Source: Cycas panzhihuaensis
Lineage: Eukaryota > Plantae > Cycadophyta
Assembly: GCA_023213395.1 (NCBI GenBank)
Contig: CM041465.1
Span: forward strand, 252,223,741 to 252,287,740
DNA: 64,000 bases
Direction of reading: 5' to 3'
Positions 8,745 to 48,629 of this stretch are shown here, piece by piece. A program made the position numbers and the translations under genes. The notes beneath the pieces were generated by a model. The model was given only the letters and a program-made list of their open reading frames with translations, did not search any database and had not been told where the DNA came from. Numbering within the stretch: position 1 is the stretch's first letter; every line of letters starts with the position of its first letter.

Positions 8745-10710
8745 ATGGCTATTAAACAACAATATTGAATCTTCATTGGGTGTAATCGTAGATCAATCAA
8801 CTTCTTCTTGGAGTTGAATGGCCAAATTATCACATAGACTTGAGGTTTCCTTTCTATATACCAAGGCAACATTTTGAGTCCACAAAACATTCGTTATATT
8901 TCCTATGGTTTGATTGTGCAAGTTGTGAGCAAATCATTCCAATTGTGATCTTGTTTGAAGCTCATTCATTTGTCTTACCTAGTTCTCTAGTGGACTTGTA
9001 TGTATAGAAGATACTATGATGCCTTTTAGAATGGTACTTTGAAGAATTTGCTTAAAGAATAGCATGGATAGATTATGTGATATCAAATGTGTTATGTAAC
9101 CTTTAGTGAACATGCAGGCGATTATGATTAATGGATAGTTTCCATGGCCCATTATCAATTTGACCACTAATTGGAATGTAGTTGTGAACATCAGGAACAA
9201 TTTAGATGAACCATTTATGATCGTATGGTATGAAGTTCAACAACTTACCATAAATAAGGATGTACATTTGTTGCATTATTTATAAGACTAATGCATTTAT
9301 ATGGGAAGAAAATCCTATAGTAATTTTGGGAAATTGCTTGTCTTAATGTGGTGCATTATAATCTCTTTTTTGATGGCATGACATTGATGATGCAATAGGG
9401 ATGGTTTGCAACATTGCTAGAACTCTTGGCAAGATCGTGTCTATGGGACTAGTTCTCTGGATTCTTATTAGAGGGAATTAGACCTATCAATTTCAAGCTA
9501 AAAATTAGATTGATAGTTTTGTTTACTTCCCCTCACTCTAATTTCAAAGAGAAGCTAGAATGTTTGGAGGAATCATTATGAACAATCACCTGATGATTTT
9601 TGTTCCCTTTGGAACTCTAGATGGAGACTTTATCATCTTTATTGGTGACTAGTATATCAGGAGTCATAGGTTGAATACAATCCCTCTATGTAAGTGGGAA
9701 CTTGAATCTAGTTTTTATGTATGGCCATTTTGTTTTACAAAATTCATTGGGTAGAAAGCATTAATTGATTGATTTGCTTTCTTATGAGGCAATATCTAAG
9801 GAAAACATTTGTTGATGGGAAGGACCTTGGAATGCTTGATGAAGTGCTCATTAATGGGAAGGGTCCTACCATTATAATGCTTCGATCCTTGTTGGTATCG
9901 AGTATAGAAATTGAATGTTAAGCTTGTTAGGTTTATGCTCTAGTCAACTCCTTTGATAACATCTAAGATTGGCCAAAGTGGTACAAACAGATTGAGGATA
10001 TTTGAATGAATAGCGTAGAAAAACCTATCGCTTAAGGGTACACAATGTCGGTAGTGCCACATGTTTGAACTTAAGAATCTAAAATCACAACATGCTTCTT
10101 ATGGAGACAGGGCCATTCCTACATAGTGCAACAAAATTACCAAAATTTAGATATACGTATGGGTTAGTCTTATTCATTCTAGGTTCAAATGAGACCATAA
10201 TGCAAGCACTAATTATTATATTGTTGCAAGCACACAATTTGTTAATACGACTATCTAGACCAATGTCACTAGTGCTACCACTCTACATTACTCCAACTCA
10301 AAGGTCTGCATTAGGGCCTCTTCCATATGCCCCAATGATTATTATGACAAGTACCTCTCATTTGAACTTGCCAAGATCCATAAGGTGATTTTTCACTAGC
10401 TGCATTGAATATTTGATGCTCCTTTTTGTTATTCTTTTATTTCTTACAATATAATCAACCACTTAGTTTTGCTTGCATCTTTTATACATAACTAGTGGAA
10501 TCGTCTTCAAGAGGTACTCGACCTAATCCATGGGGTTTTTTCAAATATGGGCAAATAAATATCACTCAGGTGTATGTGTTGTAGAATAAACCATTTGAAA
10601 TAATTAAAGAGAAGCGACATTGCACTTTGAATGTCATCTCTTTTAATGCTCTGTCAACTAGCTCAAACTTAAAGATTGTTTTAATTTAACTGGAGTCTTC
10701 AAACTTTATT
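8745..10710 (+). pseudogene. SKU5-like: Unprocessed SKU5/SKS (monocopper oxidase-like, multicopper oxidase family) pseudogene, 3'-truncated
   Basis: Exons: 9118-9227 (ING*FPWPIINLTTNWNVVVNIRNNLDEP); 9399-9669 (NSWQDRVYGT..TYQFQAKN*IDSFVYFPSL..VPFGTLDGDFIIFIGD*YIRSH); about 9793-9926 (LRKTFVDGKDLGMLDEVLINGKGP); 10019-10384 (KTYRLRVHNVG..NHNMLLMET..SYIVQQNY..NASTNYYIVAS..LHYSNSK..RSI); about 10496-10710 (RPNPWGFFKYGQINITQVYVL). All match the Arabidopsis SKU5 protein as I recall it. Many stops and frameshifts. Exon 1 (about 8745-8820) is only weakly recognisable. Confidence 0.93.
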
Positions 10711-10719
10711 TTTTGGTAG

Positions 10720-11400
10720 ATCTATGGAGGACATCTTGCGATAAAGAGGATAGTACAAAGATCATGACAGTGGGATCCTTTTGGCCTTCCTTACACAAGA
10801 ATGAAAAGCATTATGTTGCTTGTTATGATGCCTACAACTAATGGAGAGACCATCCAAAGGATTTTCCATGCCTATGCACATTTCTTTTTAATTTAGCCCT
10901 TTGAAAAGTGGGGCATTGATTTCGTAGGGCCAATGCATCCAACATCAAGCAAGGGATACCAACACATACTAGTTTGCTCAAACTTTGTGAAGAAATGAGA
11001 ACTTGAAAGGATGCCACTGAGATCATCCAAGTGCACAAGTGTGATTGGGGAAAAAGATTGCCAAAAGCTATATGGGCATATTATATTACTTGGAAGACAG
11101 CTACAGGAATTAGTCCCTTAGAATTGATATATGGAAAACACGTTTGTCATGCCAATGGAATTAGAGATGAAAACACTTGGGACATCTAATCAATCAGACA
11201 TGTTACTACCCGAGGCCTAAAAGCAAGGTTAATGGACATTTATGAATAAGAAGAGATTCAAGAGCAAGCTTTATAAAGAACTCGGATCGAGACAACATTA
11301 GAAAGCAATGGCATGAACATTACATCTAACAAAAAGTTTTAAAGCTGAGCAACAGCGCTTGTGAATTGATATAGGTTGAAGTTGCCAAGAAGCCAATGAG
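10720..11400 (+). mobile_element. Degenerate Ty3/gypsy integrase fragment
   Basis: FWPSLHK, EKWGIDFVGPM and W..RLPKAIWAYITTWKTATGISPLELIYGK motifs; part of the catalytic core between them is missing. Confidence 0.85.
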
Positions 11401-11589
11401 TTGAGACAATTTTATAAAGATAGTGCAAAAACAATCTAGACTCTAAATAATATAAGATCATTATCTAGATTTGATTTTGTGCTTAGTTAGTCATCTAACT
11501 AAGCATTTAGCTCTTTTTATTCATGCATTTAGGAGTTGTTTAGCTGTTATAGTCTCACCTAAAAGTTCATGCTTTAATGTGGGGAAGTT

Positions 11590-12140
11590 CTTGTAGATAT
11601 CACTGCCTTGAACAACAAGTGAAGGTATTGTTACTCTATTGTAGATGTTGCACTATTGCAGATGTTGTAGATGTTGCAATCTTCAATAAAAAATGAAGGG
11701 ATTATGGAAAATGTCATATCATTGTAGTTATTGCAGATGTTGCAACTATTGCAATCATTGTTGCCTTGAACAAAAACTGAAGGCACTATTTTGAATGTTG
11801 CAGTGAAGGCACTATTTTGAATATTCTAGATATTGAAGTGAAGGCACTATGCTACATTCTTACACTATTGTAGATATTGCAACTATTGTAGATGTTGTTG
11901 CCTTCAACAAAAAGTAAACATATTGTTTGATGTTGCAATTTTGTAAATGTTTTAATTATCAAGGCAATATTGTTATAGAGGCACCAATTCAAATGCTATA
12001 AATAACACAACATTGTAAATGTTGTAATATTGCAACAAAGCTATAATGTTGCAAGAAATGCAAATGTTATGAATGGCGAGGATGATTCTAGATGCCAAAA
12101 ATATTACAATGTCAAGATAATAAAATTGTTGTAGAGCGTG
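11590..12140. repeat. Degenerate minisatellite-like tract (ACTATTGTAGATGTTG / TGAAGGCACTATT motifs); duplicated at 6027-6380
   Basis: Many imperfect copies of the short motifs are visible directly. Confidence 0.7.
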
Positions 12141-12344
12141 CCTTCAAGATAATGTGAAGGTAAGACATACAATCTTGTTGTCATCGGAAAATATGAAGGA
12201 GCGTGAAATCTTAGAAGAAAATAAGAGAAATATAAGAGCAAACTCTCCTTAAACACCCTCCTTCTCCTCGTTATGATCATATTATAATAGTGACGAGGAA
12301 AGATGAAAGAAGTTGTGAAAGATAAAAGGTAAAAGTTGCTTTAA

Positions 12345-15300
12345 AAGACAACCTATAACTCATTGGAAGGTTACCCTAGTGTTCTTGAGACTAAATCATA
12401 TGGCCTTATAAGTAAATGTTTCCCACAAGGCTATGAAAGAGCTCTTGTGGTGATATTCGATTGTGATAAGAATCAAGTTGTACTTTGAAAACCCATCCAT
12501 AAGGGACAAGACCTCGGCGATAGTTTGATCGATGACCTAGTCAATGGAAGGAAAGGGAGGTTGCCTTTGTAAAAATCAATGCGGATGCATATCATTCCTA
12601 TTCTTTATGAGGATGGGGATGATATTAGCTACCCATTATGGATCATCAATTAGAGTGATAAAATTCACATTTAATTGTTTCATAACCGTACTTCAAGACT
12701 ATCCACAACTTGGCTATAATAGGTCACTACTTTTTGTCGCATTGCCACGACATCTTTCTTGGAGACAATGTTATTCATGATAATATCATGGTTGATTCTT
12801 TTCATGTCAAACTAGTGCCATGCAAACATGTCAAAATGTTTTTGAAGAGATTAGTGTAAGCATTGATCTCTTTAGGAGTGGTTTCAACGCCATTTTGGTA
12901 ATCATAGTATTTGACATTAGATCTAATATTATACTTATAGTTTCTCCCAGAGGATAGGGTTCTCTTCCTCAAAGTGTTTAAGAGATGAAGGAAGTGCTTG
13001 TTCCATAGACATAATTGTTGCATCACATTGTAGTGTCTAAATACCTCCTCTAGGATTGAGAACCTTTTCAAATCCTAGTTTATGGTGGCTAGGAGGAAGG
13101 TTGAACTTGCCAACCATGTGCTCCTGTGTGGCCTCGTCATTTTAAAATAATCCATTCCTTGGCCTAAAAGCCTAATCATATGGATGAGTTTGATTTTAGG
13201 TTTATCACGCGGTACTTCTATTGAGCAATAAGCACTCTAACCCTAACTTCCTCTAGGATAAAGAAAGTGTCCATCCCAAAGGACATAGAGTCTAGTCCTA
13301 TTTTGATTACTTTGTGGCCTTTGAAACAAGAGGGATGATGTTAGATCTACTTGAGGAGGCATTGGTTAGTTGAAGAATCCTCATAACTACATCTATGTAA
13401 CTTTTGTGAAGGAACTATAGCACAATGGAGTGTGGAAGCCACTTCTCCCATTTGTACTAACCATGGTCTTCAAGGAGAAGGTTGTAACCAATGTCTTGGC
13501 TTGTTATTGCTACTTAAGTGTTTACAATTTTTCCTTCTAAGGAGACAAAATTGTGGTTCTCCCAAAGGGTAATTTTTGTGTTATGCCATATTTTTGATAA
13601 ACCCAAGTGGTTAGTTGGAATTCCATTAACTAACTATAATAGGTATGATATTGATTGTAGTCCTAGAGTTAAATATGCATTTATTAACTCTTATATCTCC
13701 ATTTATGAAACTAATGTAGAATGGGAATTTTGTATTTCTCTCCTCTTCGGACTAGGAAGAGTGGAGGGGTTGAAGATGATCAAAGGCATAGAAGGGGTAT
13801 AGAGTGGTGCAACTAGAACCTCTAGGCAAATCTCCATATGGTTAGAAGATATCTTCATGATATCAAGTGGGGGCATGCTTGATGTGACTGATTATAACTC
13901 ATCTAAGATGGAATAAGGCCTACCGTTGGTAAGTTGCAGCAAAGGGCCCATAAAGGCAACTAATGTGTGTGGTAGGAAGAGACTTAAGAAGGATCATTAA
14001 TGGCCTCTCCTCATGTGTGGTTTACTCTATACTAGCCTCTTTGGCTTTGGCTTAAGATTAAGTCGTGACAAGAATTCCATTTTCATCAATTGCACTACAT
14101 GTGTGGAAAATTTTAACACCCATAACCTTAGATTTTTGTTTAGATTTAAGGGATGTGTTACCAATAGCTAGGCATTTCTGACAAGGCTAGTGAGATTTCC
14201 CCCCACTAGAAGGTGGGTATTCCTTGATGACAATACATGAAATATCCTTAGCTTTGGTCACTTTAGCTATATGAGCATTAGAATCCTAGCATTATTATGT
14301 CTAATTAAGCGGTGCAAGTGTTGTCTCCTTTTGGAAAAGAGGCGTGCAGTGTGAATTGATATTACTTAGTGTTACTAGATCCAAAAGGATGGTGCAACCA
14401 TTATCCCTTGTTAGGTAGTGATGAGGGTGGAACAAGGTGTTCATCCGCTCTTTCATGCATGATGATATTGATCACCTTTCCTTCATCCTTATTAGGGGAT
14501 TTTGAGCCAGATGGGAAAGTATCATGAGTTTAGGATTTTAGCTTAGCTTCCTACATCTGAGTATCACTGGATTTACCATCACTTGATTGTGATGTCTCAC
14601 TTTCTAAGGAAGGTCTCTCAAGCATATTCTTCTAAACTTTGTCCTTACCTTGTCCCATTTTCTTACTGTGATTAGGGAAATGATCCTTATAGATTGGTTG
14701 GATTTAGAGCTAAGCTTATAATGTCAGGCCTGATATTGGTCTAGGGCATGATAATCCTTAGTATTATGATAGTTTAGTGATACATGTACCACATGGAAGA
14801 GATTTAAGGAAATGGTTATCATTTTACTTTGGATGATCCTTCTTTGACTACTGAGTGAGCATTATGGTCTTTCTCCCTTGTGATTACTTTCCACCCTTTT
14901 ATGGCGGCTCACTATTTTTGGTCAACTCTAGCTTATTGAGTGTTGCTAGTGTCGTCTAGGTATTACATAGCCAAAGGTGAGAGAGTCTCATAGTTTATCT
15001 GATGGCCAAGTCCATTGGGTTCTTGAATTTAGAAGTGTTTCCTTTTTGGCATGTAGGGTTCAAAGGTTAGCGATCCTATATTGTATATTATGGGCACAGT
15101 ATAACTAAGCACTTACAGATTGCTTCCTCATAAGAGATAGGCTCGAACTTGAGGACCTCATAGTGCACCTCAAGTGAGGGCATTCGTGAAGAGGTTATAT
15201 AGTTAGTGACTAATAAAGTGTCATGCAACCATGGAATTTGAATCCAAGTCACCTTGTAAACATGGAGTTGGACTCATTTTTTCTTTTCATAAGAGCAAAC

Positions 15301-16290
15301 AAGGCTCTTTATAGAGTATGGTAGGGCTTAGCCATGCGAAAATATTTGATAAAATGGTCCATCGAATTGTTGAAATTTATGGGCATGCTATTTAAAGTAT
15401 ACAAAACCATTTCAAGGCTTCTTTATTAAGGGATCTAAGGAAGATTTCAAGATTACGACTACAAAGTACATGTATTAAACACAAGTCAAGGCATATACAT
15501 CGATGTGAGAAGCTAAGTTCAAATCCAAGTCCATCATCATACTCGAGGAGTTTTGACATGGGTTGTAGCGGCCCAACCATGGCTACCTCATACATGAGGG
15601 GAATCCTCATATAGTTAGCATAGGATTTCCACAAAGTAGTAAGCATTTTAATCCATCCCTGTTATTTATGAAGAGGTGTTCTAAGATGAATGGGATTTGT
15701 TATTCATTGCTAGAGTAGGTACTTAATTATTGGTACAAATGACAAGCGTTTGGGAAAGAGCAAGTCCATACCAAATTGCTAAGGTTGATAACAAGTATTA
15801 AGTCAATTTTAAGTGTAAGGAATTATGGCGAGTGGTGATGACATAAGATGCGGTGCAAGATGAGCATCGAAGTTGTTGATGCAATAATTACAACGTGTTG
15901 TGAGTAAGGCTAACATAGCTAGTGACCTATGGAAGGAGTATGATTGTGGGTATATGAAGTGCCCTTGTACCCAAATACTCAAGCTAACGTTGGCCACGCT
16001 AAGATGGTGTTTGAGGAACTTCTGTGAGTGGTGTAAAAGGTGCATGCTCATGTGTGTGCACTATGGATGTTGAACTTTGGAATGCCATCGAAGTGAGATG
16101 CCTTTGTGTTAACTTGCGAGGAGAATGTAGGGGAGTCATGTATTCCGGATCAAGAAGGAGAACTATCCTTAATACTAACCAAATATTCAATTTCAAATGG
16201 GATGGTAGGGAATAACTATCAATAGCTTGTGCACTAGATCAAAATGCACCTTATTAATTGAAGCCCCTTGCATGGAGCTCAATTTTATAC
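12345..16290 (-). mobile_element. Truncated, degenerate Ogre/Tat-like Ty3/gypsy gag-protease-RT (5' part)
   Basis: Gag FLRSLNKEALKWF (about 15400), pre-RT KNDEA..EHMVG, RT LSLMDGFSKYN and FSLKNTRVTFQ. RT is truncated near 12345. The motifs are shared with the element at 29493-48629. Confidence 0.8.
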
Positions 16291-17760: not shown

Positions 17761-19059
17761 TTGTGTGATCCCTGACACATAGGAGTCATAACAACCCCTT
17801 CTTACCATTAAGAACTTCAAAAATTGGATAATTATTTTTTACTGTTGTTGTTTTAATTTTTATTAAATTATTAATAATTTATAATAATAGATTGCTCATT
17901 TCTCTTCCTTAAACGATCCATCATTTACTTTAGATAGGCAAAAATTGGTTGATCATAATAGCCACAATTTTAGGAATTGAATTGGATTCAAATACTACTT
18001 TTAATTCTATAAACTTAACATATGTATTTGTTATTGTGTAGGTAAGATTGAAGTGGAGATTGGATAAAAACATTACGAGAATCATTTAATGCGATTGGAG
18101 CAAGGTTTTAAGTGAATTAAAGGAGATTATAATACATTTGTTTATTTATTTAGTAGACATTTTGGAGTTAGACACTCTGAGTAGCTCTTCTCTTATTTTT
18201 ATAAATGTATTGGTATAATATTATGTTTATTTAGGGAGGAGGGTGAGGAGGGGTTTGAATTTCTGTCTCAAGGAGAAATGTTTCTATTATGAAAATTAGC
18301 GCCCTACCAACTCCATTTATTTCATTCATATGTAAATATATTAATAAATTTTTTTTTTTCGGGAGGTTTCAAATTCCTTCCTTAGGGACTCAAGGATAAT
18401 TTATAATTTAGCATTCCTTTGGGACTTTTGAGGGTGTGTGTCTTGTTGATTGTTTTTGTGTGTTGGTCGATCATATTTGCACAATGTTTCTTTTCTTTTC
18501 TTTTTTATGAATACATTACTTCACATTCATCCCTGCACAATTTATTTTATTTAATCTTGTTGATGAGTTGAGATCTACATAATTTCTAAAAAATTAGCAT
18601 CTCATACAAAAAATTATGCTTTAAAAGTTTGAAAACATTTTAGATTTACTCTTTCTTGTTTAATAGCATCTATGTCAAAATATTCTTGATGACTCATAAA
18701 ATAATAGCATTTCAAATAATATAATATAACATTTCATTGCATTACAATTTTTATTTCCTATGTATACAACCCATTATATCGAATATTATATTATAATGCA
18801 ACACTTTAATAATAATTAAATTCAAAATTACATTTTATTTAGCAATAAAAATGTCCTTCTTTACTCCATTATTTTATTTTGATGTTCTTTATTTTCTTTA
18901 CTTAGATCTTACTTAGCATAATTCAAAATTTGTTGCTTTTATAATTATAAATATTTGTATTATTTGTTTTATTTCAATTTCATGTATTTACTATAACACA
19001 ACGTGATGGTTTATTTTTGCATTTATGTAATAAATTTTTAATATGTCATATTTATTTAG

Positions 19060-20004
19060 TATGTGCCAACTAATATATGTCTAGCTTTCCATATAGCATG
19101 TATCTTTTCATTCATATATATATATAGACACATACACACACACATGTATATATATACGAGATGCATATACTATATATTTATATTTATATCTATAATTTTA
19201 TACATACACATCTGTCTGTATATATATACATATGTAATGCATACTAATATATTTATATATTTATATCTATACTATAATTATATTTATATATTTATCATTA
19301 TATTTATGTTGATATTTATTCTTATACTTATGTTATCTAGTACTTCATACTTATACCTTATTTGTACCTTATATATTTTATCTTAATATTTCTATTCATA
19401 ATTATTCTTATATATTTATATTTAAGCTTATTTATAATAAATATGAAATAATTTATATAATAATATCTCTCTCTCTCTCTCTATGTATATATATATGTAC
19501 TCACATATATATCGTATTTGTGTGTGTAATGCAATGTATTGATATTTATGTAAGAAACATGAGCAGGAGACACACATAAATCACTATATATTATGAATAT
19601 ATACATATACATAAATATAGAAACACACATATAAATATATAAACACACGTATACTCATATTTATATTTATATTTATTGTTATACTTTATAGTTATACTTT
19701 ATGTTGATATTTATACTTATATTTATAATTAATATAAAATAATTTCTATCATATTATCACAGATAGATAATCTCTCTTTATATACACACACACACACACA
19801 CACATATCTATACATACACACGCATATACATACATATCTAAATATACATGCATAATTAATTTTATGTTAATACTTATTTATATTTATGTTTATTATTATA
19901 CATTACATTTATACTTTATATATTATGTTAATATTTATAATTATAATTATTCTTACATTTATATTTATACTTATAATAAATATAAATTAATTTATATCAT
20001 ATTA

Positions 20005-20038
<34 letters not shown>

Positions 20039-20083
20039 CATAAACACACATACACACATACATATATATATACAATTTTACAT

Positions 20084-20122
<39 letters not shown>

Positions 20123-20174
20123 AACATATACACATAGCATAAATGCATATATATGTCGATACACTAAATATATA
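19060..20174. repeat. AT-rich compound microsatellite field: (TA)n, (CA)n, (TC)n, in roughly 250-300 bp higher-order units
   Basis: A TAATAAATAT..ATAATTT..ATATTATC(TC)n-like block recurs at about 19436, 19730 and 19975. Confidence 0.9.
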
Positions 20175-20674
20175 NNNNNNNNNNNNNNNNNNNNNNNNNN
20201 NNNNNNNNNNNNNNNNNNNNNNNNNNNNNNNNNNNNNNNNNNNNNNNNNNNNNNNNNNNNNNNNNNNNNNNNNNNNNNNNNNNNNNNNNNNNNNNNNNNN
20301 NNNNNNNNNNNNNNNNNNNNNNNNNNNNNNNNNNNNNNNNNNNNNNNNNNNNNNNNNNNNNNNNNNNNNNNNNNNNNNNNNNNNNNNNNNNNNNNNNNNN
20401 NNNNNNNNNNNNNNNNNNNNNNNNNNNNNNNNNNNNNNNNNNNNNNNNNNNNNNNNNNNNNNNNNNNNNNNNNNNNNNNNNNNNNNNNNNNNNNNNNNNN
20501 NNNNNNNNNNNNNNNNNNNNNNNNNNNNNNNNNNNNNNNNNNNNNNNNNNNNNNNNNNNNNNNNNNNNNNNNNNNNNNNNNNNNNNNNNNNNNNNNNNNN
20601 NNNNNNNNNNNNNNNNNNNNNNNNNNNNNNNNNNNNNNNNNNNNNNNNNNNNNNNNNNNNNNNNNNNNNNNNNN
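20175..20674. other. Assembly gap (500 N)
   Basis: Run of N. Confidence 1.
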
Positions 20675-20699: not shown

Positions 20700-21747
20700 A
20701 TGTAATAGATTCTAACTAAAAGCAAAAAAGGAGAAAGGGGTGGATGGAGAGAGACGATGTGTACCTAGGAAGTGTAGTGGTTGATGAAGAACCTCACTTG
20801 TATACGCAATGGATGCCTCTCACACTATAGTTGGTATGTAACCAAAGGTTGGTATGTGAAAACAGAGGCTTCCTTACCTTCCACGTGACAGCCTAAAGAC
20901 AAAGCGGAGTGGGAAAAGCAAAAAGAAACGAGTAAATGTACCAAGAAACAAAGCAAGCATAAGAGAAAAGAAGGGTGAAGACTTACTAGGAGTCATACAT
21001 TCTTCCCTCTCTCTGAACGTTACTTCAGACTTGGATCCATAAGTGAGTCTTTCCTTTCAAGAAGAAGTTTGCAAGATACTATATAGGTAAACCTATATGA
21101 TATGAATGCCAAAATTTTATATTTTAAGTTAATGTGTTGGCTACTCCTAAAAATAATTCTACTTTCCTTAAGGTAAACCACGATGTACCAAGTAAGAAGG
21201 AAAGGGTAGCCTCATGATGGAAAAACCCTCATGCAAAAGGCTCTCACGTAACCTCAAAATATAGCAAAGTGAAGGTTATGCAAATGAGTCTATGAGCAGC
21301 AAATAAGCGTAAGGGGATGAATGATGTGGGATATAAGAGATGCTTAGATAACATAAAATCATTTATGGAGCAGGTGAATCACCATGCAAGCCTCATCAAG
21401 GTCCAAATAGATGATGGACAAGGTTAGGGGGCATAGAGAAGGTCCAAAAGAATGGTGTGTGCAAGCACAGGAATTAGCACGGCAAGGGCATGTATCTTGA
21501 TATCCGGTGAGCTTAGATTCCACCCACTCTAGTTAACTCAAGGAAAGCATGGGTGCAAGAGAGGAAGGAAGGAAGGGTTTGCCCTTGGGAGTAGGTCTAA
21601 CTAGGATGGATCCCACCTTACTCCCTTCACCCAATCCTTGTCAGCCCTCTCTTAAAGATTTCTTGAAGAAAACCAGTAGAGAAATGGGAAGGAAATCAAG
21701 GTATACAAAGCTAAACATAAGGAAAAGTAATCCTTTCTATAGCCAAA
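20700..21747 (-). mobile_element. Left part of a long Ogre/Tat-family LTR split by the CRM insertion
   Basis: Local similarity to 41341-41430 (CCCTTGGGAGTAGG..) and to 46930/47390 (GTGTACCTAGGAA, CCTCATGATGG). Continues at 28401. Confidence 0.55.
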
Positions 21748-22797
21748 TGATCTAGGAGGATCTACCATATGTTTACAGGATGCGGAAAATGCTAGGCATT
21801 TGCATAACTAAAAGAGATATGGCCAAATGGTATCAAAATTCTATGAAATTTTGTTTAAAGGGATAAGACACATCCAACTAGATGTGTACAAAAGGTGGGG
21901 TTCAGAAAATATCATTTGATTAGAGTTCAAGCCTTGTCTTTGCATAAAAATTAATCCCACAGCTAGCAGAAAAAAATAGAAAATATATATTATAATTATA
22001 TGAATAGAAACATGACCAAATAATATCCAAATGAGCTAAAATTTTGAGGAAGCGGAGGATACATGTGTTCCTATATGTGTACCAAATTTGAGTTGAATTA
22101 GAGTCCGTTAAGGTTAGTTACAAGCCACAACTTTTAAGAATTGCATGAAGGCCACTTGGACAGCAGAAAAACAACAAATACATATTATTATTAAATGAAT
22201 AAAAATGTATCCAAATGACATCCAAATGAGATAAAAATTTTAGGAAAATTTGAGGGGACATGCGTTCCTATCGTGTACCAAATTTGAGCTAAATTGGGTA
22301 TGTTAATATTGTTACAAGCTACAACATTTTAAGAATTGTATGAAGGCCACTTGGACAACATGCATTAGGGTGGTTAGTGGTTATACTTGCATGATTGCCA
22401 CTTGTTAAACATGCAATTCAGGTTTCTTTCTATAAATTGAGCCCTTCTGAGGTTGGAGAGGTGGTTCTTGGAGATGTGACTTGGGAAGCATCCTTGGAGA
22501 AGCATTTGGAGGGTTTGAAGGTCCCACTTATGGTATAATTGTAACATTTATTCCTTGTAATTTTACCATTCTTTTGCTAGTTGATTCTCCACCATTAAAT
22601 GAAGATTTTCATGGTTTAATAAAAGTATTACTCTCATACTTTTTGGATCAATATCAAGAATAATTTATTTGGTGTAAATTTTCCTTTCATGGGCTCATTA
22701 TTGTTTGATGTTATTGAGTTTTCTACACTAACTCCGGGATCTCAAGGAGGAAAGGTTGATAATTGATTTCTTCACCAACTAAGCTCTTTTGGGATCA
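21748..22797 (+). repeat. CRM 5' LTR (about 1050 bp) with internal ~190-bp tandem units
   Basis: Direct repeat of 27348-28395; TATA-like CTATAAAT at about 22430. Confidence 0.95.
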
Positions 22798-22930
22798 TAT
22801 TTTGGCATCGTAGCCTCACGATCTTTGTTGTAGGGACTTGAATGGTACAAAACAAGGAAGGATACAAGAGAAGGTGAAGACTTTCTTGTGTTGCAATCAC
22901 CAAGAAGACAAAGAAAGAATCCAAGCACCA

Positions 22931-25900
22931 TGGGTGAAAAGAAGATGGAGAAATTAGATTTGAAAGGCTTGAGAAAAAGCGTCGAAGCCTTGATGCAAAT
23001 GATGACCCACCTACCTCTAGTCAAAGGAAAAGGCAAAGAGAAGGAATTTGAAGGAGGATCACATATGACCACGACCATGAAGAGGAAGAGGAGGAGACCT
23101 TAAAGCACTCTTTTGAAGAAAGCAAGGGTACTTCATCTCATCAACCCTTCAAGGTGGAGGCAAGTTGGATATTCCAACTTATGATGGAGAGGTAAATGCT
23201 GAAAAGTTGGACCATTGGTTGGATCAACTTGAAACCTACTTCACAATCTATGCTTATAGTAATGCCCAAAGCTTTAGGTTGCTAGGCTCAAGTTGTGTAA
23301 ACATGCATTGACATGGTGGAATGCATATTTAAAGACTCATGATGTATCTTCTTTTTCATGGAGGGATTTTAAGAAAATAATAAAGAAGCAATTCTACCCC
23401 ATAGGTCATGAGGAAGACCAATGGGTCACTTGGCAATATTCGCCAAGGGAGAGGTGTAAGTGTCCAAGACTATACTTCTTTATTTTTTAGGCATGGCATC
23501 TTACTTGGTATTAATGGATGAACATGTCACTCTTATGAAATTCATTGGAGGATTACATGAATACATAAGGAAGGAACTAAGGCTTTTAAGGTTCAATCCA
23601 TTGGAGAAGCAAGTAGGATGGCTATGGCAATAGAAAGTAAAAGTAAGAAATCTACACTCATGTCTAAAGATTCTACTTTTACTTCTAATAAGTATGAAAA
23701 GAATCTAAATGGCACTCATCAAAAGGCAAGAAGAAAGAACTAATTTTGTTAAAAGTTCTAACTATTGTGAGCATTGTGATATTAGTGGTCATATTACAAA
23801 GTGTTGGAAGTTGCATCTAACTAAAGAAGCATATCGAGGATATGGAATTAAGAAAGAAGGAAAAGGGAAAGCACTACTTTACGAGGTGGAGATTCAAAGT
23901 GAAGGAGAAGAAGAGAAGGTCACTCTACTTACAAATTATGAAGATGATGCTACAAGGGAGGAACTATTTCACTTGAGCTTCAAGTGAAATAGTATGATTG
24001 GTGCCATTATAGATCAGGGAAGCAAAAGAATTTGATCTCAGAAAGTTTGGTAAAGAGCATTGGTTTAGTAACTACTCCTCACCCTCACCCATATCCTCTT
24101 GGTTGGATCCATAAAGATGTAGAAATGCAAATATCAAAACAATGTACACTTAAACTTTCCATCACTAATGATTTTGTTGATGAGGTAATATGTGATGTGG
24201 TGCCCTGGATGTATGCCATGTTGTGCTTGGAAGTCCCTACTTGTGGGCTCGAGCTGCACTCTTCTATCGAAGGAGAGAAAGTATCGATTGATGAAGGATA
24301 ACAAGGGCTTCATCATAAAGGCCACAAGGAAGCACGTGGATAAGATAGCATTAATTTAATTCTCAAGCAAAAGGATGATCAATGCATGTGGTAAATTTGT
24401 CATCTTAATGGTGAGGAGAAAAGAAGAGCGAGATGAAGAAGGTCCTTCTACTCACACTCTTCTTATATCACCTAAACAAATGCAACAAATTGAGGAGTTA
24501 AAGACAAGGTATGATATTCTATTTCAACATGTTGATGGGCTTCCACCAAAGACAAAGATAGAGCATGAAATCACTCTTGTAGGAGATGCACCATTACCTA
24601 ATGTTGCTTTGTATAGGCACTCCATTGTAGAAAATAATGAGATAAAGAGGCAAGTTGAGGAGTTAGCATTCGAGGGTCATAAGACCTTCATGTTCACCTT
24701 ATGGGTCACCAATTGTCTTGGTGCCTAAGAAGGATGGAGGATGGAGAATGTGTATAGATTTCCGTGCTTTGAATAAAATTACAATTAAAATCGCTACCCT
24801 TTACCTCGTATAGATGATTTGTGATCAAATTCAACATGTTTGTTATTTCACTAAATTGGATTTAAAAGTGGTTATCACCAAGTTAGGGTAAGGAGGAGGA
24901 CACATGGAAGACGGCCTTCAAAACAAAGCAAGGACTCTTTGAATGGATGGTTATGCCTTTGATTGTGTAATGCTCCTGCAACATTCATGAGGCTAATGAA
25001 TGAAATATTAAGGCCTTACTTGGATAATTTTGTTGTTGTCTATCTTGATGACATTTTGATTTTCGACAACACATGGGAGGGAACATTTGCGACACATAGA
25101 AGAAGTTTTAAAGACTATGGCTAAGCATCATTTGAAGCTTAATGTGAAGAAGTGTGAATTTGGCAAGGAGAACTTGATCTTCTTAGGCTTTGTGGTTGGA
25201 GGAGGAAAGTTGAGCATTGATCCACTCAAGACTCAAGCCATCCTCAAATGGCCTAGGCCAACAAACATCACGGTGAGAAGTTTTTTAGGAGCTTGTCAAT
25301 ACTTGAGAAAGTTCATTCTTTATTTCTCACAGGTTGCAGCACCTCTACATGGATTGACAAAATCTAGTAGAAAGTTTACTTGGGGTTCCAGAGAGGAAGA
25401 AGCCTTGCTTCTTTTAAAGAAGAAAATTTGTGAAAGCTCTTAGGTTTAGCGATGCCAAATTTGCAAAGGCCTTTTAGTAGAAGGCGATGCAAATGGAAAT
25501 GCGATGGGAGCTGTCCTTATTCAAGATGGGAAGCCTATTGCGTACCATTCGGAAGTATTCACCCCTCAAGTGAAGAACTACCCAACATATGATCGAGAAA
25601 TGTTCGCACTTCATCGAAACATGCAAGCATTGGAGGTCATACTTGCTCGGAAAAGAGGTTGTAGTTCATCTGGGTCATAAGCCTCTTCAATTTTTACAAA
25701 CTCAAAAGTAAATTACTGAAGCAAGGCGCATGAAGTGGATGAGTTATTTACAATAATTCAATATTGTAATTAAGTATAAAAGGGATCTAATAACAAAATT
25801 GCATATGTTATCTAGACCACATATTCCACTTCTTCTTCTACTTTGTTTGTAGTTCTCTTATGAGTTTGCGGTGGAACCAATGCATCATGAAGAGTACAAA

Positions 25901-27308
25901 GACTTGTACCATGAAGATGAAGCTTTGAAGGAAGAATTAGAGAACCTAGCGAAAGGAAGACCTTCCCGACTTGCTTGGAAGGATGGTCTACTTTTCAAGG
26001 GAGCATTCTATGTTCCATCAAAGGAGACAAGATCAAGTGGCTTAGAGAAGCCCATACTTCTAAAGTAATTTAGTCACTTTGGTATAGAAGACTTTAGCAA
26101 ACTTGAGAAGATATGTTGTATAGCCAAAATGCAAAATGATGTAAAAAATATGTAAAAGTATGTGTAATGTGTAATACTTCTAAGCCTTCTTCTAGAAAAT
26201 TAGGATTGTATACACCACTACTATTCCCACTAGGCCTTGGGAAAGTATCTCCATTGATTTTTAGGGGACTTCCCGTGACTAGGAAGGACATGATTATCTT
26301 TTGTTGTTGTAGATAGGTTTAGTAAAATGATATGTCTAATACCTTGTAAGAAGACAATCACAGTGCAGGGAGCGGTGAGTTATTCTTGAGCATGTATGGA
26401 AGAATTTTAGCTTGCCTTCTTCCATCATTCGGATCGGACACTCGATTCCTTTCATCATTTTGGAAGTCACTATGGGAGATGATGGATACCAAATTGAAGA
26501 GGAGTACAAGTTTCCATCCTCAAGCAGATGGACAAACCAAGTAGTGAATAGAACTTTGGTACATCTATTGAGGGATACAATTCAAGCATCCAAAGACTTG
26601 GGATGAATCATTGGCTTTTCTACAATTTGCTTATAATGGGGCGATACATGCATCACACTCTAAAGCACCTTTTGAAGTTTGTTTGGGATACTTACCTCAA
26701 AGTCCATTTGACTTAGAGTTTTCCATGCAAGCTAAGGAAGGATCCGTCAAAGAGAAGGAGGAGCATGACAAGGCTTTAAGATACTTGAGAAGATCCAGAG
26801 TCCTGAAAGAAGTACATGATCAACTTCTAAGGACTCAACAAAGTACAAGGAAAGATATGACAAGCATAGGCAAGAGTGTACTTTCCAAGAAGGAGATTTA
26901 GTATGGTTATACTTGAGCAAGGAGAGGTTAAAAGGAGAAGGTAAGAAACTCAAACCTATAAGGTATGGACCATTCAAGATTTTGAGAAAAGTAGGTGGCA
27001 ATGCTTTCCAACTTGATCTTCCACCTTATATGCAAATATATTCAGTAGTAAATGTTGAATACTTAAAACTCTTTGAGCCCTCCATGCTAGATGAGGAACG
27101 GGACCAGCTCACTTTACCTTGAGTTGATGATTTGTATTTAGAAAGTGAGGAGCCTCTCGAGGAAGATTGTATCTTGGAGAAAATCTACCAAAGCAAGACA
27201 TAAGACACATGAATCTTTAGGGATTGGAGTAGCAGGGGCAATTTCCTAGTAAGGCCAAGTGGTTTAGTAGGCAACAAGGAGAACAACACTTCCCCATATC
27301 AATTCTAA
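22931..27308 (+). pseudogene. CRM gag-pol polyprotein, frameshifted
   Basis: HALTWW (gag), CEHC..GH..CW zinc knuckle, HPHPYPLGW (protease region), [12 protein letters not shown] and VVYLDDILI (RT), RNase H, integrase, RYGPFKIL..DLPPYMQIYSVVNV. Confidence 0.9.
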
Positions 27309-27347
27309 GCCAAGCAGGAGTTGGCTATTTTTCAAGGAAGGGAGCCA

Positions 27348-28395
27348 TGATCGAGAGGATCTACCATATGTTCTGGATGCGGAAAATGCTACGCATTGCC
27401 ATAACTAAAACAGATATGCCCAAATGGTATCAAAATTCTATGAAATTTTGTTTAAGGGATAAGACACATCCGACTAGATGTGTACAACAGGTGGGGTTCA
27501 GAAAATATGATTTGATTAGAGTTGAAGGGTTGTGTTTGGATAAAAATTAATGGGAGAGGTAGGAGAAAAAAATAGAAAATATATATTATAATTATATGAA
27601 TAGAAACATGACCAAATGACATCCAAATGAGCTAAAATTTTGAGGAAGCGGAGGAGACATGAGTTCCGATATGTATACTAAATTTGAGCTGAATTGGAGT
27701 CTGTTAAGGTCATTTACAAGCTACAACTTTTAAGAATTACATGAAGGCCACTTGGATAGCAGAAAAATAGCAAATACATATTATTATTAAATGAATAAAA
27801 ATGTAGTCAAATGACATCCAAATGAGCTAAAAATTTGAGGAAGCTGAGGGGACATGCGTTCCTATATGTGTACGAAATTTGAGCTAAATTGGAGTACGTT
27901 AATATCTGTTACAAGCTGCAACATTTTAAGAATTGTATGAAGGCCACTTGGACAACATGCATTCTGGTGGTTAGTGGTTATACTTGCATGATTGCCACTT
28001 GTTAAACATGCAATTCAGGTTTCTTTCTATAAATTGAGCCCTTCTACAGGTTGGAGAGGTGGTTCTTGGATACTTGACTTGGGAAGCATCCTTGGAGAAG
28101 CATTTGGAGGGTTTGAGTCCCCCTTATGGTATAATTGTAACATTTATTCCTTGTAATTTTACCATTCTTTTGCTAGTTGATTCTCCACCATTAAATGGAA
28201 TTTTCATGGTCTAATAAAAGTATTACTCCTCATACTTTTGGATCAATGTCAATAATAATTGATTTGGTGTAGAATTTTCCTTTCATGGGCTCATTGTTGT
28301 TTTGATGTTATTGAGTTTTCTACACTAACTCCCAGGATCTCAAGGAGGAAAGGTTGATAATTGATTTCTTCACCAACTAAGCTCTTTTGGGATCA
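27348..28395 (+). repeat. CRM 3' LTR
   Basis: Follows the PPT; ends GGGATCA before TSD CCAAA. Confidence 0.95.
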
Positions 28396-28400
28396 CCAAA

Positions 28401-29492
28401 GGACAAAAGAGAAGAAAAACACACTTTCAAATAGGCTCCAATGAGGTAAATATATGCTAAAACATGAAAACAAGATACGGGGTACCTGTTGGGCTGGGTT
28501 GAGGGTAGATTTACCCCTGCAACTAGTGGAGGAGGGCAGGTCCTGTAAGGTTTGCAGGGTATTTCCCAAAGGGGAGCTGTAGAAGACACTTGCTGGGCAA
28601 AATTAAGGAAGAAATGAGGAGATCTTGCTTGGAAATGCTTGGAGGAGGGTCTCCCACCACGTGACAGAGCTGATGTAGGCATATCTTGGTGAAATGGCGG
28701 AAAAGCAGAGTTATAAAGCGCACTGTGAAGGAGAGTGGGAAGAGAGCGGAAATAGAGTAGAACGTGATGTTTGAGAGCCAAGAGATGTGAAATAAAGTAT
28801 TTTTTGGGATATATACCCATCCTAACCCTAATCAAGTGATTAGGGTTTGGTTATGGCTGAGTTGGTCACTTATCCAGGTGGCAATTCCATAAAAAAAGTG
28901 AAAATTTCCACAACGGATAAAAAAAATAAAGTGCAACAGTCCCATCATGGTAAACTTCATGGTACCACAGTAAACTTTGCGGTACCACATAGTTTACAGC
29001 GTTCGAGACCAAAATGCCAAAATGGCAATGGCCAAGGTTCTAGAAGCCCTAGAAAGAGGTGTGACAGGCCTAAGAGGGGCTGACCCTCTGTCGGTGGTAG
29101 GGACAATCTAGATGACATGTGAACTAGGCCAAATGAGGCACCAAGAGCTAGAAATCCTAGAAATGTCGTGATGGGGACATAGGATCAGGGTATGAGCGGA
29201 TCATACCAGCTGAGCGAGGCCTAAGGTGACATGGAGATAGCACAAAGGGTCATAAAGCACCATGGGGATGCCTACCTGCGAAAGGTAGGTCCGTTATCGT
29301 CCATAGGCCAAAAGTATGACAACCAGCATGATCAAGCGGTAGATGTAAGGTGATCATACAAATGTGGCAATCAATCGTGCAATGAGGCAATGCTTCATCT
29401 ACCTTTCCAAAGAGCAAAGAAAGGTGAAAGGGAGAAGCATACTGCGCACCTAAGTCGACCTATCCATATCCATTCTCGGTAGCCGAGAAATA
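28401..29492 (-). mobile_element. Right part of the split Ogre/Tat-family LTR
   Basis: The terminus (GAAGCATAC..CCATTCTCGGTAGCCGAGAAATA) resembles the termini at 42735 and 48629. Confidence 0.55.
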
Positions 29493-31210: not shown

Positions 31211-34200
31211 CACTTAGTTGCCTCCCTATATTGGAGGGTCAAGAGGTCAATTGTAGAACCTATTAAGGAATTTCCAATTGATAGCCTTTTCAAACTCAAG
31301 ACCTTCCTATGTAGTAATGTAATAGACACTATTATTAAGGGATTCCATGACCATAAAGGGCATATCCATTTGGGGCCAAATTTAAAAGGAAGTCATATAG
31401 TTATTTTAGTTTAAGGACTTGGCCCCCAAGGACTAAAGTCATGGTCATAGTCATTTATCATACATCTTTTAGGCTTTAGCTTTGGACATAAGGTTAGCGT
31501 AATAAGTGACAAGGTATTTTTCATCTAACACCTCAACATCGAGAAGATGGGCTTGGCATTGCCACTCTTTATCTATGAACTCCTTAAGGGAAACCCTTAA
31601 AGGAAGGGATTTCAATCTTAAGAGGTAGTGCCACTTTTAATCTATAGACCAAGGAAAATAGCATCATACCTATGGTCATCCTGATAGATGTTCTATAGAC
31701 CTATAAGGTCGGGTGAAGTTGGAGGTGCTAATCCCATTAGAATTTGGCAATAGTCTTCTTAAGAATGTTGATCAAGATCTTGTTGAAAGATTTGATCTAG
31801 TGATTGGTATGGGGGTAATATGGAGATGAGGTTTTATAAGAGATTCTAAAACTCTTACAAAGTTTATCCAATTCCTTATTGTCAAATGGGGTCCCGTATC
31901 AGTTATGAGGACATTGGGGACCCCACACCTATAAATGATATGTTGAAAGATGAAGATAACTATTGTCTTGTTTGTTGTTGAGGATAAAAGGATAGCCTCA
32001 ACCGACTTTATGAAGTATTCTATTGCTTTTAGAATGAATTTATATTGGGTAGAGGATAGTGGGGTTATGGCCCCAATGAGGTCAAGACCCCATTAGAAAA
32101 ATGGCCATGATGACATTACGACATGCAATGCCTTGAAAGGCTAGTGGATTATATTGGAATGCTCTTAGCATTTCTAACACCATTAAGCATAGGTGTGGGC
32201 ATCCTTAAAAAGAGATAGCTAATACAAACTCATGTATAAGATTCGTTGGGCCATAGATTAGTTACCAAAATGTCCACTGCAAATGTTGTCATGGCATTCA
32301 TGGAGAACATGATCAGTTTCCTCTAGAGTAAGGCAATAAAAGAGGACATCATCAAATGATTGCTTATAGAATATGTCCTTAATGAGGAAGTACTATCGTA
32401 TGATGGCCCTTATGCATTATCAGACTTTATCACTAGCATCTGCGGGGTGCTATTGTCGAGTTAAATAACTAACAATATCATCATACCACTTGTTGTTGGT
32501 CAAGAGATGCTCGTAAGTCTACTAGAGAGCTAAGAAGGGTTCAAAAAGTAAGGAGTCATCAATTGGTATATTGGCAGAATTAAGGAGGGGGGCATTAGCT
32601 AGTTTCTCTACCACAACCATCCCCTTATTTGACTTGTGGTTAATGACCTTCAAGTTATATTCTTGGAGGAGAATAACCCATTGACCTTTTCTCTCTATCA
32701 AGTTGGACCAGGTCATCAAAAAATATAATGGGTCTAATTGAACTATAATATGAGTAGTATTGCCTAGGAGGTAATGGTATAGCTTCTTCACAATGAACAG
32801 TAATGCTAGGCATTCATTCTTGGCTAGGGGATAACTTAGCTCAACTACCTTGAGAGTATGGCTTATAAAGTGGCGACCCTTCAATATTAGAGTCATCTTC
32901 CTAAGTGAACATAGCACCAATTGATTTGTTAGTTGGTAAGGTATAGAGGATAAAGAGCTAATTAAATAAAGGAGGGGCCAAACTAGGGACTAAAATGAGA
33001 GCTTTCTTGAGCTCTTAAAAGGCCACTTAGGCTCTAGGGGTCTAAATGAGCAGGGTCCCCTTTTTAAGTAAGTTGGTTAGTGATTTTGTATTGATGGAAA
33101 AATCCTCCAAAAAACATCATAAGAAACCTAATTGCCCCATAAATGACTTAATTTGTCATTGCATATTAGGGGGAGACATCTCAATTACATCTTTGACCTT
33201 ATCTAGGTCAACCTTAATTCCTTCTTACAACAAGAGGAATCTTAAAAGTTTACTAGTCATCATTGTAAAGACATTTTAAGCGATTTGGGGCTGATATGAT
33301 ACATACGACACCTAGTGAAAATCTTCCTTAGGTCCACAGGGCCATCTTATAGGAAAGGCCCATCAAGTCATTTATAAAGACCTCAAGAATCTTGTTAATA
33401 AGATCATGAAAGATGAACTACATGACCCTTTAGTAAGTTACCCTGGCATTCTTCAAGCCAAAGGACATTGCTTTAGAAGTGAATGTTCCTTAAGGAATAA
33501 TAAAGGTCATTTTATTGCAATTCTCAAGGGATATTTGGATTTAGTTATATCTAGAGAAGCTATCCATTAAGGACATAACTTCAAACCCCATTATACAATA
33601 AATAATTTGATTGATGAATGGTAGTAGGAAATTATCTTTAGGGTATGCATTATTTATATTCCTAAAGTTAACACAAATCTAAATGGTCTTGTTCTTTTTA
33701 GTGACCGGGACTATGTTGGACACCCATTTCAGGTAGTCAATTAAAGTGATAAGGCTCATGTTATATAGCTTCTCCACTTCTATCTTAACCACAGTCAGTA
33801 GTTTAGGGTGCAATGGATGTTATTTTTGTCGAAGGGGTCAGGCACCTAGAATTGTCATAAGATTGTGGGTGACACTATCAGGGTCAATGCCCTTCATATT
33901 AAAATAGTCCCACATAAACATATCACAAAACTCAAGAAAGAGTTTTGTGTACTCCTCAACCTCCTAGGGTGAGCATTCAACACTTATCATGATAATCTGA
34001 CCACTAATAAGGATAATGTCCTTAGTTGTTCCTACATACAAGACAATCCCTTCCTCAAAGTAGAGGAGAGCTTGGTCAATAGGTCCCATTGGGATCGGCT
34101 AAAGGAGAGCTAATGGATAATCACTTCTAAAAACTAAACTTATGGTGTTCAAAAGGTAAGTTAGGTGAGGATCCTACTAAATGCTCTAACAAGGCCTCGT

Positions 34201-46181: not shown

Positions 46182-48629
46182 TGAAATGCTCCTAATAGTG
46201 ATGACCTTATAGCTAAATAATGGTAGACCTAGGTTGTGAGACCTACACATATGAAATGAGTCATAAGATGTCAATGTAGGGTGCCTATGTGCTATTAGAG
46301 TGTGCATGTAAAGGGAGTCATTCCTTTCTACCTAAGAGGCTAAACTAAGGGCATCCAAGTAAGGGTACATGTGCATCAAAGGGAATGGGTGACTCTTGGA
46401 TATCAAATGATACCTATGGCAAAATGAGGATGTGTAACCTACTCCTAAGATGCAATTACATGCTTTTTCAATTTGGGTGAATGTACTTAGCCTATTCCTA
46501 GTGGGGTTTATATTCTACCCTTATAGATTCAGGACTCGTGTTAGCACAGTCCCTCTTCATGTTTTGGATTTAAAATCTAGTATGTAATCTATTGGCTCAA
46601 TCCCCTACTTTAGAAAATGTAATGTAATGTAAGTGGAAATGCAGATAAAAAAAATGCAACACAAACAATCTTTTCCTTTTCCTTTTTTTTTTTTCTCTAT
46701 TTTTTTATATGGAAGAAAAGGGAAGGGAGGAAAAAGGGTGATAGGCAAATTAACTCAAATCCTTTTTCTTTCCTACTTTCTCTCTCTCTCTTTTCTCTTT
46801 CTTTTTTTTTGTTTTAGTTTAGGGAAATAAAAGGGAAAAAGTGGGAATAAGAAAATAAAGAATTTCTTTTTTTTTCTCTTGCTTTCCTTTAAAACGCAAC
46901 TAATGAGAAACGATAAACTAAAAAGATAAGGTGTACCTAGGAAAATAGAGGTTGGAGCAGTGGTAACTTCCTTCCAATAAACCACGATGTCCTTGGTGCT
47001 ATTAGAAAGAAATAGAGCTAACACTTACATGCTCCTATAGGGATTTTGGTAGCATTTCTGCTTATCGAAAACCCTTATGATTAAAAAAAAAAAAAAAATG
47101 CAAAAGGTGCAAAAAAAGCTTTAAAATAAAATGAAAGAGAAGGGATATATAACTTACCTTTTGAATGATCATTGATATGAGAATTGTTGCAATACTTGCA
47201 TGATAGAAATTGATTGAGAATTTCACCAACTTCTACCTCCTTCCTATAAACACATTAGTTTCCTACAAAGATAGCAAAGAGCTATAATATCCCTAATGGA
47301 AATTACCACATGTAGCTCATAAAATGATGTAAGTTCAAAGCATAAAGGAAACATTATAAAATCAATGAGCATAAAAAGAAAGATGAGTGGAGATGGGGTG
47401 CCTCATGATGGTAATCGTCCCCTGATATGTTTGGTTCTATAAGTTATACTTAGGAAACCTCCCAAACCTTGTAACTTTCCCCAATGGATCAGTCAAGAAA
47501 CAAGCACAAGGAATCAAGAAGAGACTCTACTCATAAAGGTAAATGAGATGATGACAAACAAAAAAATCCACTAGCATATCACCATTAAGAAAATCACACA
47601 ACATGGCATGATCAAGATGAAATAAGGAGAATGAAGGTCACCTCAAGCATAGGTGAGTGGATTACCCATACCTTAGTAAGGGAATGATGGCTAATGGCTA
47701 CTAAATCTTCCTCCCAAGGATCCTCCAATAGTTCTTAGATGTTTGCTCCTAACCTCCCAAATGATAGTTAGTTATTTACACCAAATGCTAAAGTTCTAGC
47801 AGAATTTCAACAACATAATAGTAGGATTTCTCTTACATAATGGTCTTCTCCCTTCCTTTTGAAAAAGGAAGGGATTTTATAAATGAAATAGAGTGAAGGA
47901 TTGGTGGTTTTCAACCCACAATATAGGGGAAACTATCAACCTAAAAACCATGAGTCATGTTCATGGTTTGAGAGATTTTGATATGAAAAGAACAAGAAAA
48001 TGTGAGGTTTGAGATATATTTAGCCCCCCAACACTAATACGAGCCAACCTTATGCTGATGCAGCTTGTTAGGTCTAAAATTTGGCCATTACTGATCTAGT
48101 TCTCACTATTAAACCTGAATCTAGGTTGGTGACAATTGTATCACAAATTTCTTTGTGGTACTACAAATATGTTTGTAGCACCACAAAATACTTCGTTGTG
48201 CCACTAATGTAGACAAAAATTAGGGCAATAAAGAAACAATTCTATTTTTCACCAACTTCCCCTCAAACAGTCAAATAGATTCACTAATGACAGGTCTTAT
48301 AAGCATTAATCAATAAGTATTGGATGAGAAAAGGGTGAAAATGAAGCCAAACAAGATGAAAGAAATGATAATAAGTCAAGAAATGAGTTGTATGTGGTCA
48401 GGGAGGCAACTTTTCTAATCTAAGAACATCAATGGGTGGACATAAGGGGTATGGACCAAAGTCTCGATTGACATAAACATACACAAGGGGCATGGATCAA
48501 CCATCAAGCATGTACCAACCACACAATCTCATATATAAATCAATAAAGAGTGAAAAAGGGCAAGAAACATACTTACACTTACCTTATTTGGTCAAGGATC
48601 CACACCTCATTCCCAGAAGCCAGGAAACA
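46182..48629 (-). repeat. 5' LTR of the Ogre/Tat-like element (about 2.45 kb)
   Basis: TG..CA ends, adjacent PBS, termini similar to the solo LTR. Confidence 0.7.

Follow-up and report, generated by a model that had tools for sequence, protein, structure and literature searches.

The 3' long terminal repeat (LTR) of a decayed Ty3/gypsy retrotransposon carries a short tract in which every cytosine of the sister 5' LTR is read as guanine, while none of the guanines, adenines or thymines in between has changed. We analysed this tract within the window, by which we mean the whole 64-kb stretch of DNA under study, and the result supports one strand-coordinated event rather than a pile-up of point mutations. 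The coordinates of the features on which the argument rests are given in Table 1.

Table 1. The retrotransposon, its LTR pair and the stretches that set the two LTRs apart (positions count from the first nucleotide of the window).
Feature	Position	Strand	Basis
C>G tract; 12 of 12 cytosines, supported as ancestral, read G; 0 of 8 G changed	27509..27563	+	LTR alignment
Sister stretch with 12 cytosines, 5' LTR	21913..21967	+	LTR alignment
Second C/G cluster, unsaturated	27392..27419 vs 21795-21822	+	LTR alignment
Candidate patch of replacement or resynthesis, 129 nt; no LTR difference besides the 12 C>G	27489..27617	+	
Ty3/gypsy LTR retrotransposon, decayed	21748-28395	+	TG..CA ends, 5-bp target duplication CCAAA
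Target-site duplication CCAAA, 5' copy	21743..21747	.	Same 5 nt directly 3' of 3' LTR
Target-site duplication CCAAA, 3' copy	28396..28400	.	
5' LTR, TG..CA, 1050 nt, three ~195-nt tandem units	21748..22797	+	Alignment, repeats
3' LTR, TG..CA, 1048 nt, three ~195-nt tandem units	27348..28395	+	Alignment
Decayed internal region, Ty3/gypsy order gag, RT, RNase H, integrase SH3	22798..27347	+	
Polypurine tract AAGGAAGGGAG before 3' LTR	27334-27344	+	

The host of the tract is a dead LTR retrotransposon of the Ty3/gypsy type in plus orientation, because it combines two direct TG..CA LTRs between 5-bp target-site duplications (CCAAA) with a polypurine tract, Pfam domains in the gypsy order and broken reading frames. 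The Pfam matches fall on broken pieces of open reading frame in the order Retrotrans_gag, RVT_1, RT_RNaseH and SH3_Tf2-1, and the longest open reading frame in the 4.5-kb internal region is 118 aa. In a gapped alignment the two LTRs differ by 62 substitutions and 16 indels (~92.4% identity). They stand ~5.6 kb apart on one gap-free stretch, the sole run of N in the window (500 N, 20175-20674) lying upstream of both. AT-rich DNA (GC 16-18%) laden with microsatellites and minisatellites leads into this gap over 19000-20175, and the retrotransposon starts ~1 kb downstream of it. The surrounding DNA also has a persistently positive GC skew from 21 to 60 kb (+0.1 to +0.29 per kb), with A exceeding T and with window totals of 12658 G versus 10269 C; as inverted copies flip its sign, the skew most likely reflects the sense strands of plus-oriented, purine-rich retroelements.

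Within the LTR alignment the tract stands out as 12 consecutive differences of one type only, uninterrupted by any indel, with C in the 5' LTR at 21913, 21928, 21932, 21933, 21938, 21943, 21956-58, 21960, 21963 and 21967 opposite G in the 3' LTR. The 55-nt core contains 12 C, 8 G, 17 A and 18 T in its 5' LTR form, and every C but no G, A or T is altered. The nearest cytosines retained in the 3' LTR lie at 27499 and 27607, which sets the span of the event at 55 to 107 nt, and 27500-27606 is the longest C-free run of the whole window. Ten of the affected cytosines are in CHH context, two in CHG and none in CG; the base 5' of the changed C is T four times, G four times, C three times and A once, with no TpC bias, and C>T is absent from the tract, where all 12 changes are C>G. 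Given 13 C>G among the 62 LTR substitutions, a run of at least 12 has a probability of P < 3e-10, and the confinement of all 12 changes to C, among the 20 C/G sites of the core, has P = 8e-6.

A sequence-only reading of this DNA had claimed a conversion of 12 of 12 cytosines in 55 bp of the 3' LTR, indifferent to neighboring bases, seen in CHH and CHG contexts, leaving A, T and G untouched and arising in a single coordinated event. The gapped alignment, the context counts and the two probabilities bear out each of these points, and the strings that it quoted are present in the window (the 5' string from 21911, the 3' string from 27507). Its description of the remaining LTR differences as mostly transitions does not hold, since 25 transitions and 25 transversions lie outside the tract.

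The tract is without a companion among the paralogous pairs of the window. Self-BLAST of the 64 kb, followed by run analysis of every such pair, gave no other same-type run longer than 3; the other pairs differ mainly by transitions and least often by C/G transversions. One run of three C>G sites, at 43136, was considered as a further instance and set aside as alignment noise in a GC-rich indel region, and the other long C-free or G-free runs in the window were rejected as tracts, being microsatellites or polypurine/polypyrimidine DNA with no sister copy. DNA folds of the tract region were no better than those of shuffled sequences for either LTR version (z -0.58 and -0.07), giving no sign of a hairpin, and an inverted-repeat scan returned only weak repeats of 9-21 nt, none of which brackets the tract.

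Several other features of the window are recorded here in their own right. Direct repeats of 96% identity (3975-6030/7412-9469 and 6027-7410/11787-13159, with an inverted relative at 264-1464) resemble LTRs or tandem parts of another element; they show an ordinary, transition-rich spectrum with no same-type runs and so serve as an internal control. Four complex, non-microsatellite C-free stretches of 48-70 nt with 16-21 G (55010-55066, 18193-18262, 31798-31845 and 47857-47911) have a composition like that of the converted tract and no paralogue in the window. An ~800-nt domain at 60000-60800 is extremely poor in G (35 G, 206 C, 185 A and 275 T over 60100-60800); it holds a poly-C run of ~19 nt near 60341-60359 and ends sharply on the right at about 60800, where G rises from 1-2 to 19 per 50 nt. 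No sister copy occurs in the window, and the domain may be either naturally rich in pyrimidines or a G-to-C-type tract of far greater size. At 53799-54386, units of about 83 nt repeat in tandem with ~80% identity to one another.

The direction of the change depends on which letter was there before, and cytosine is supported as the ancestral state at the 12 sites, because the paralogous 195-nt units, the end of a family contig and the deep coverage of the 5' form all agree. Where the paralogous ~195-nt units of both LTRs can be aligned with the tract, they read C or T at its positions (CAAGC, TTGCAT, ACAGC), and the family contig end, taken from Logan contigs, reads ..AATCCCAAAGCTAGCAG... These contigs derive from other samples and were aligned at a likeness of at least 85% on 21740-27720; the best public run shares at most 46% of the sampled words of 26400-29400. 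The family is abundant: in four public runs, which come from four studies and three organisms, its contigs pile up on the 5' form, and over 21740-22010, where the family contigs are very deep, there is no strongly supported alternative letter among the matches listed. Summed contig depth over 27340-27539 is 4,200-16,000 versus 300,000-425,000 in the matching bin of the 5' LTR (21740-21939), that is, 1.4-5% of it, and at 27456-27458 it is 0-16, these other-sample contigs barely covering this part of the 3' LTR. Given this depth ratio, the contig data support the view that the G form is rare or absent in the family, rather than the common variant of a subfamily. The earlier supposition that C is ancestral thus finds backing both in the paralogous LTR units and in the family contigs of the four runs, and these contigs give no sign of the common G subfamily that had been named as the mark of acquisition by recombination in place of mutation at this locus.

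Searches with the tract itself were negative within their scope. Six small open reading frames across the tract had no exact counterpart in the searched collection, homology search with the 56-aa frame spanning it produced no candidate, and a degenerate tract pattern had no match in viral contigs and prokaryote genomes. The sole match of this pattern in a metagenome contig (MDSV01128448.1, 2824-2855) is AT-rich, has no BLAST similarity to the window and was dismissed as chance.

Over the 129 nt that contain the tract (21893-22021 in the 5' LTR) we observed no ordinary difference between the LTRs, against 8.8 expected at the density of the remaining LTR sequence, with its 63 events in 921 nt, which gives P = 1.5e-4 at the tract's place; a largest gap of at least 130 nt anywhere in the LTR has P = 0.016, a post hoc value. 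AT-richness is not the cause of the gap, because elsewhere in the LTR pair differences strike A/T and G/C sites at about equal rates. This local identity suggests that the C>G changes came with the replacement or resynthesis of as much as 129 nt on a sister-like template, which could have happened either in the cell, by conversion or repair synthesis, or in the computer, as a read-sized patch. The stretch keeps an element-specific C at 27607, where the family majority is T, and hence the donor would be the sister LTR or a very close copy, if the patch extends that far.

Some 90 nt upstream of the tract the LTRs show a second cluster of C/G differences, with G in the 5' LTR at 21795, 21802, 21814 and 21822 and C in the 3' LTR, so that its direction is opposite to that of the tract. 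It consists of three clean sites and one TG/GC dinucleotide and is unsaturated, with 3-4 of about 9 G differing. Only two further C/G differences occur in the other ~970 nt, and the cluster is therefore non-random (P = ~3e-5 for at least 3 C/G changes in 28 nt). On its polarity the paralogous 195-nt units give conflicting signals; the 5' LTR has no strongly supported alternative letters among the matches listed, which hints that the 3' LTR may be the derived copy here too. If the 3' LTR is derived at both places, G>C followed by C>G would amount to a strand switch of the kind known from the surroundings of resected breaks or from places where two new strands meet. Ordinary LTR differences are present between the two clusters, and for this reason we do not claim one event for both. 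Pairing of the upstream G>C sites with the C>G sites of the tract was also considered and rejected, the folds being about those of shuffles and the inverted repeats providing no link.

The reading that we place first, with slightly less than even confidence, is that the tract is a real mutation of the 3' LTR, made in one step, linked to repair, strand-specific and REV1-like. A short patch of the 3' LTR (55 to about 129 nt) would have become single-stranded and been resynthesised in the course of break or gap repair, most likely on the sister LTR or a near-identical copy as template. The new minus strand would have received C instead of G opposite each plus-strand C, and the following round of synthesis would have fixed G on the plus strand. 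A REV1-type deoxycytidyl transferase filling non-instructive sites derived from cytosine would give the expected outcome; in a mirror alternative, G would have been inserted opposite damaged guanines of the minus strand. Four elements of this scheme we infer from the pattern of changes: that the DNA passed through a single-stranded state, that repair was the setting, which polymerase acted and what kind of lesion it met. A change confined to one strand needs a single-stranded intermediate, a uniform outcome calls for C opposite every plus-strand C or G opposite every minus-strand G, and the patch-like identity fits repair of a broken or gapped 3' LTR on the sister LTR, REV1-type insertion taking place at each template C of the strand being copied.

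Published work offers parallels. REV1 puts C opposite abasic sites and thereby produces C-to-G changes (PMC4303225), and together with Pol zeta it makes GC>CG changes on undamaged DNA at stall sites (PMC3874155). In the human germline, C>G clusters are strongly strand-concordant and go with double-strand-break repair and non-crossover gene conversion (PMC6511033), and human segmental duplications with frequent interlocus conversion are enriched in C/G transversions (PMC10172114). For the mirror alternative, G is known to be placed opposite some guanine adducts, such as N2-ADP-ribosyl-dG (PMC11359729). The second, partial cluster may also count for a real event, given that variable penetrance is expected of a biochemical process.

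Against the repair-linked reading count the 100% penetrance, the absence of C>T and the independence of context, all of which are unprecedented, together with the absence of a hairpin or stall structure and the post hoc nature of the patch probability. To our knowledge plants have no DNA cytosine deaminase of the AID/APOBEC kind, and the plant 5-methylcytosine (5mC) glycosylases cut the strand and leave no abasic sites that could be bypassed.

That the tract is a technical artefact, with the plant DNA carrying C and the G coming from sequencing, read correction, polishing, patching or data handling, is a substantial possibility. Twelve of 12 sites with a single outcome, sharp edges and no indels look more like a rule than like biochemistry, and the tract with its difference-free surround of at most 129 nt is about the size of a short read or a correction patch. 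The G form moreover has no independent sighting, the other-sample contigs being as shallow at 27456-27458 as stated above, and the window comes from a scaffolded assembly, as its 500-N gap attests. However, an error driven by context should also have struck the near-identical 5' LTR on the same contig, where all 12 C are kept, and this untouched sister counts against a deterministic, context-dependent base-calling or software error. The partial cluster upstream is likewise unexpected from a simple in-silico conversion, and the consensus of many reads should outvote one aberrant read. No sequencing platform or program known to us changes C to G and spares A, T and G; loss of dye in two-colour Illumina chemistry would also make A into T, and nanopore miscalls at 5mC are transitions.

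A further reading, which we consider unlikely, is that the tract is the product of a recurrent germline process that rewrites every C (or G) of one strand in retrotransposon patches of 50-250 nt. Such a process would combine enzyme-driven, base-specific excision or adduct formation with subsequent bypass of the REV1 type, and it might be directed at silenced or transcribed LTRs; to this mechanism we attach the same low probability. That it would constitute an unrecognised pathway of hypermutation or genome defence is, in our judgment, equally unlikely.

The cause first proposed from the letters, a mutation shower on the resident 3' LTR in which methylated or deaminated cytosines were cut out en masse, translesion synthesis passed over their sites and no patch was copied from a template, now appears improbable. 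It would account for the strand coordination, the C>G outcome and the CHH and CHG contexts, and the REV1 rule that it invokes is documented (PMC4303225). However, lesions on an already diverged LTR would have left the old differences standing, and the 129 nt around the tract, where about 9 were to be expected, have none; the data therefore point to a resynthesised or converted patch and do not support a shower in situ. Methylation by the RdDM pathway, moreover, usually lies on both strands, yet none of the eight G changed. The ROS1/DME-type 5mC glycosylases are bifunctional lyases, and 12 excisions on one strand would end in a correctly refilled gap.

Very improbable, in turn, is the acquisition of the G haplotype by recombination or gene conversion from a family member that already carried it. 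The patch-like local identity is compatible with a conversion tract, but the family contigs of the four runs lie on the C form, with depth over the corresponding part of the 3' LTR at a few percent of the 5' bin, and the patch retains its element-specific C at 27607; with a donor of this kind, the G tract of that other copy would itself need explaining. We discount almost entirely an origin in 12 separate point mutations or in selection favouring a motif free of C, for which nothing speaks beyond the existence of the differences. Against it stand the probabilities of the run and of the strand restriction, the rarity of C/G transversions in other paralogous pairs, a dead element that is non-coding here, and the lack of structure (z -0.6, -0.1). 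An in-place inversion or a template switch to the complementary strand is impossible, as A, T and G are unchanged.

If the tract is real, a plant germline can convert all C of one strand within a short patch in one event, and the break-associated C>G clusters of humans and yeast would be extended to plants in an extreme, saturated form, leaving a sequence footprint of REV1-type synthesis in vivo. It would also represent a class of multi-site events that inflates LTR-based insertion ages, with 12 of the 62 substitutions here coming from a single event, and one that would escape variant callers working on short reads. Should the tract instead be an artefact, it exemplifies a specific class of error in a chromosome-scale plant assembly, one that would corrupt both the dating of transposable elements and studies of mutation spectra.

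Several known systems share some features with the tract and differ from it in others. Our literature search found no report of G-to-C hypermutation, and nothing relevant on clustered transversions in plant LTRs or on a class of assembly error that turns C into G. Hypermutation by APOBEC3G (G>A), ADAR (A>G) and the adenine mutagenesis of DGRs (diversity-generating retroelements) resembles the tract in acting on one base of one strand, densely, over retroelement tracts of 100-150 nt or longer. The action of these systems precedes or accompanies reverse transcription, and as a rule both LTRs would bear its marks, whereas the change here is of another base and confined to the 3' LTR; the tract appears younger than the insertion of the element.

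We know of no evidence for adducts of pierisin-type enzymes in plant germlines. The N2-ADP-ribosyl-dG that these enzymes form is a base-specific enzymatic modification after which G:C to C:G can predominate, and it fits the mirror reading, but G:C>T:A changes result from it as well, its known sources are butterflies and bacteria, and it has not been described as saturating one strand (PMC11359729).

Known mutation clusters are sparse and mix C>T with C>G, and those made by APOBEC enzymes need TpC. In the kataegis produced by APOBEC, UNG and REV1, C is deaminated to U in single-stranded DNA, the uracil is excised and REV1 inserts C (PMC4303225). The tract is alike in being a strand-coordinated cluster at cytosines whose C-to-G outcome is explained by dCMP opposite an abasic site, and with 12 C>G in 55 nt it goes beyond the six or more closely spaced, strand-coordinated C/G mutations by which kataegis is recognised. 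It differs in having no preference for the TpC (TCA/TCT) context among its preceding bases, in showing 12 of 12 C>G in place of partial targeting with mixed C>T and C>G, and in a density of 100% where kataegis is sparse; on the TpC test, APOBEC-type kataegis was rejected as its origin.

The activity of REV1 and Pol zeta on undamaged DNA shares with the tract a GC>CG signature, here entirely C:G>G:C, that arises without exogenous damage in short, error-prone patches, although the events described are single changes or complex ones of at most 6 nt at hairpin bases (PMC3874155). The tract, in contrast, has no hairpin and comprises 12 separate sites between which the intervening bases were copied correctly.

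The sequence-only reading knew of no described plant process that gives saturated C-to-G tracts in transposable elements; taken as a claim that no parallel has been described, this was too strong, as strand-concordant C>G clusters, far sparser, are known from the human germline (PMC6511033). Those clusters comprise a few mutations over kilobases, whereas the tract takes in every C within 55-107 nt, and the link to a break is one that here we infer. The class of substitution and the strand concordance are nonetheless the same (PMC6511033; PMC10172114), with 12 of 12 C and 0 of 8 G affected in the tract, and where the human clusters accompany break repair or conversion between repeats, the plant tract lies in an otherwise identical stretch of 129 nt between two repeats, a candidate conversion patch.
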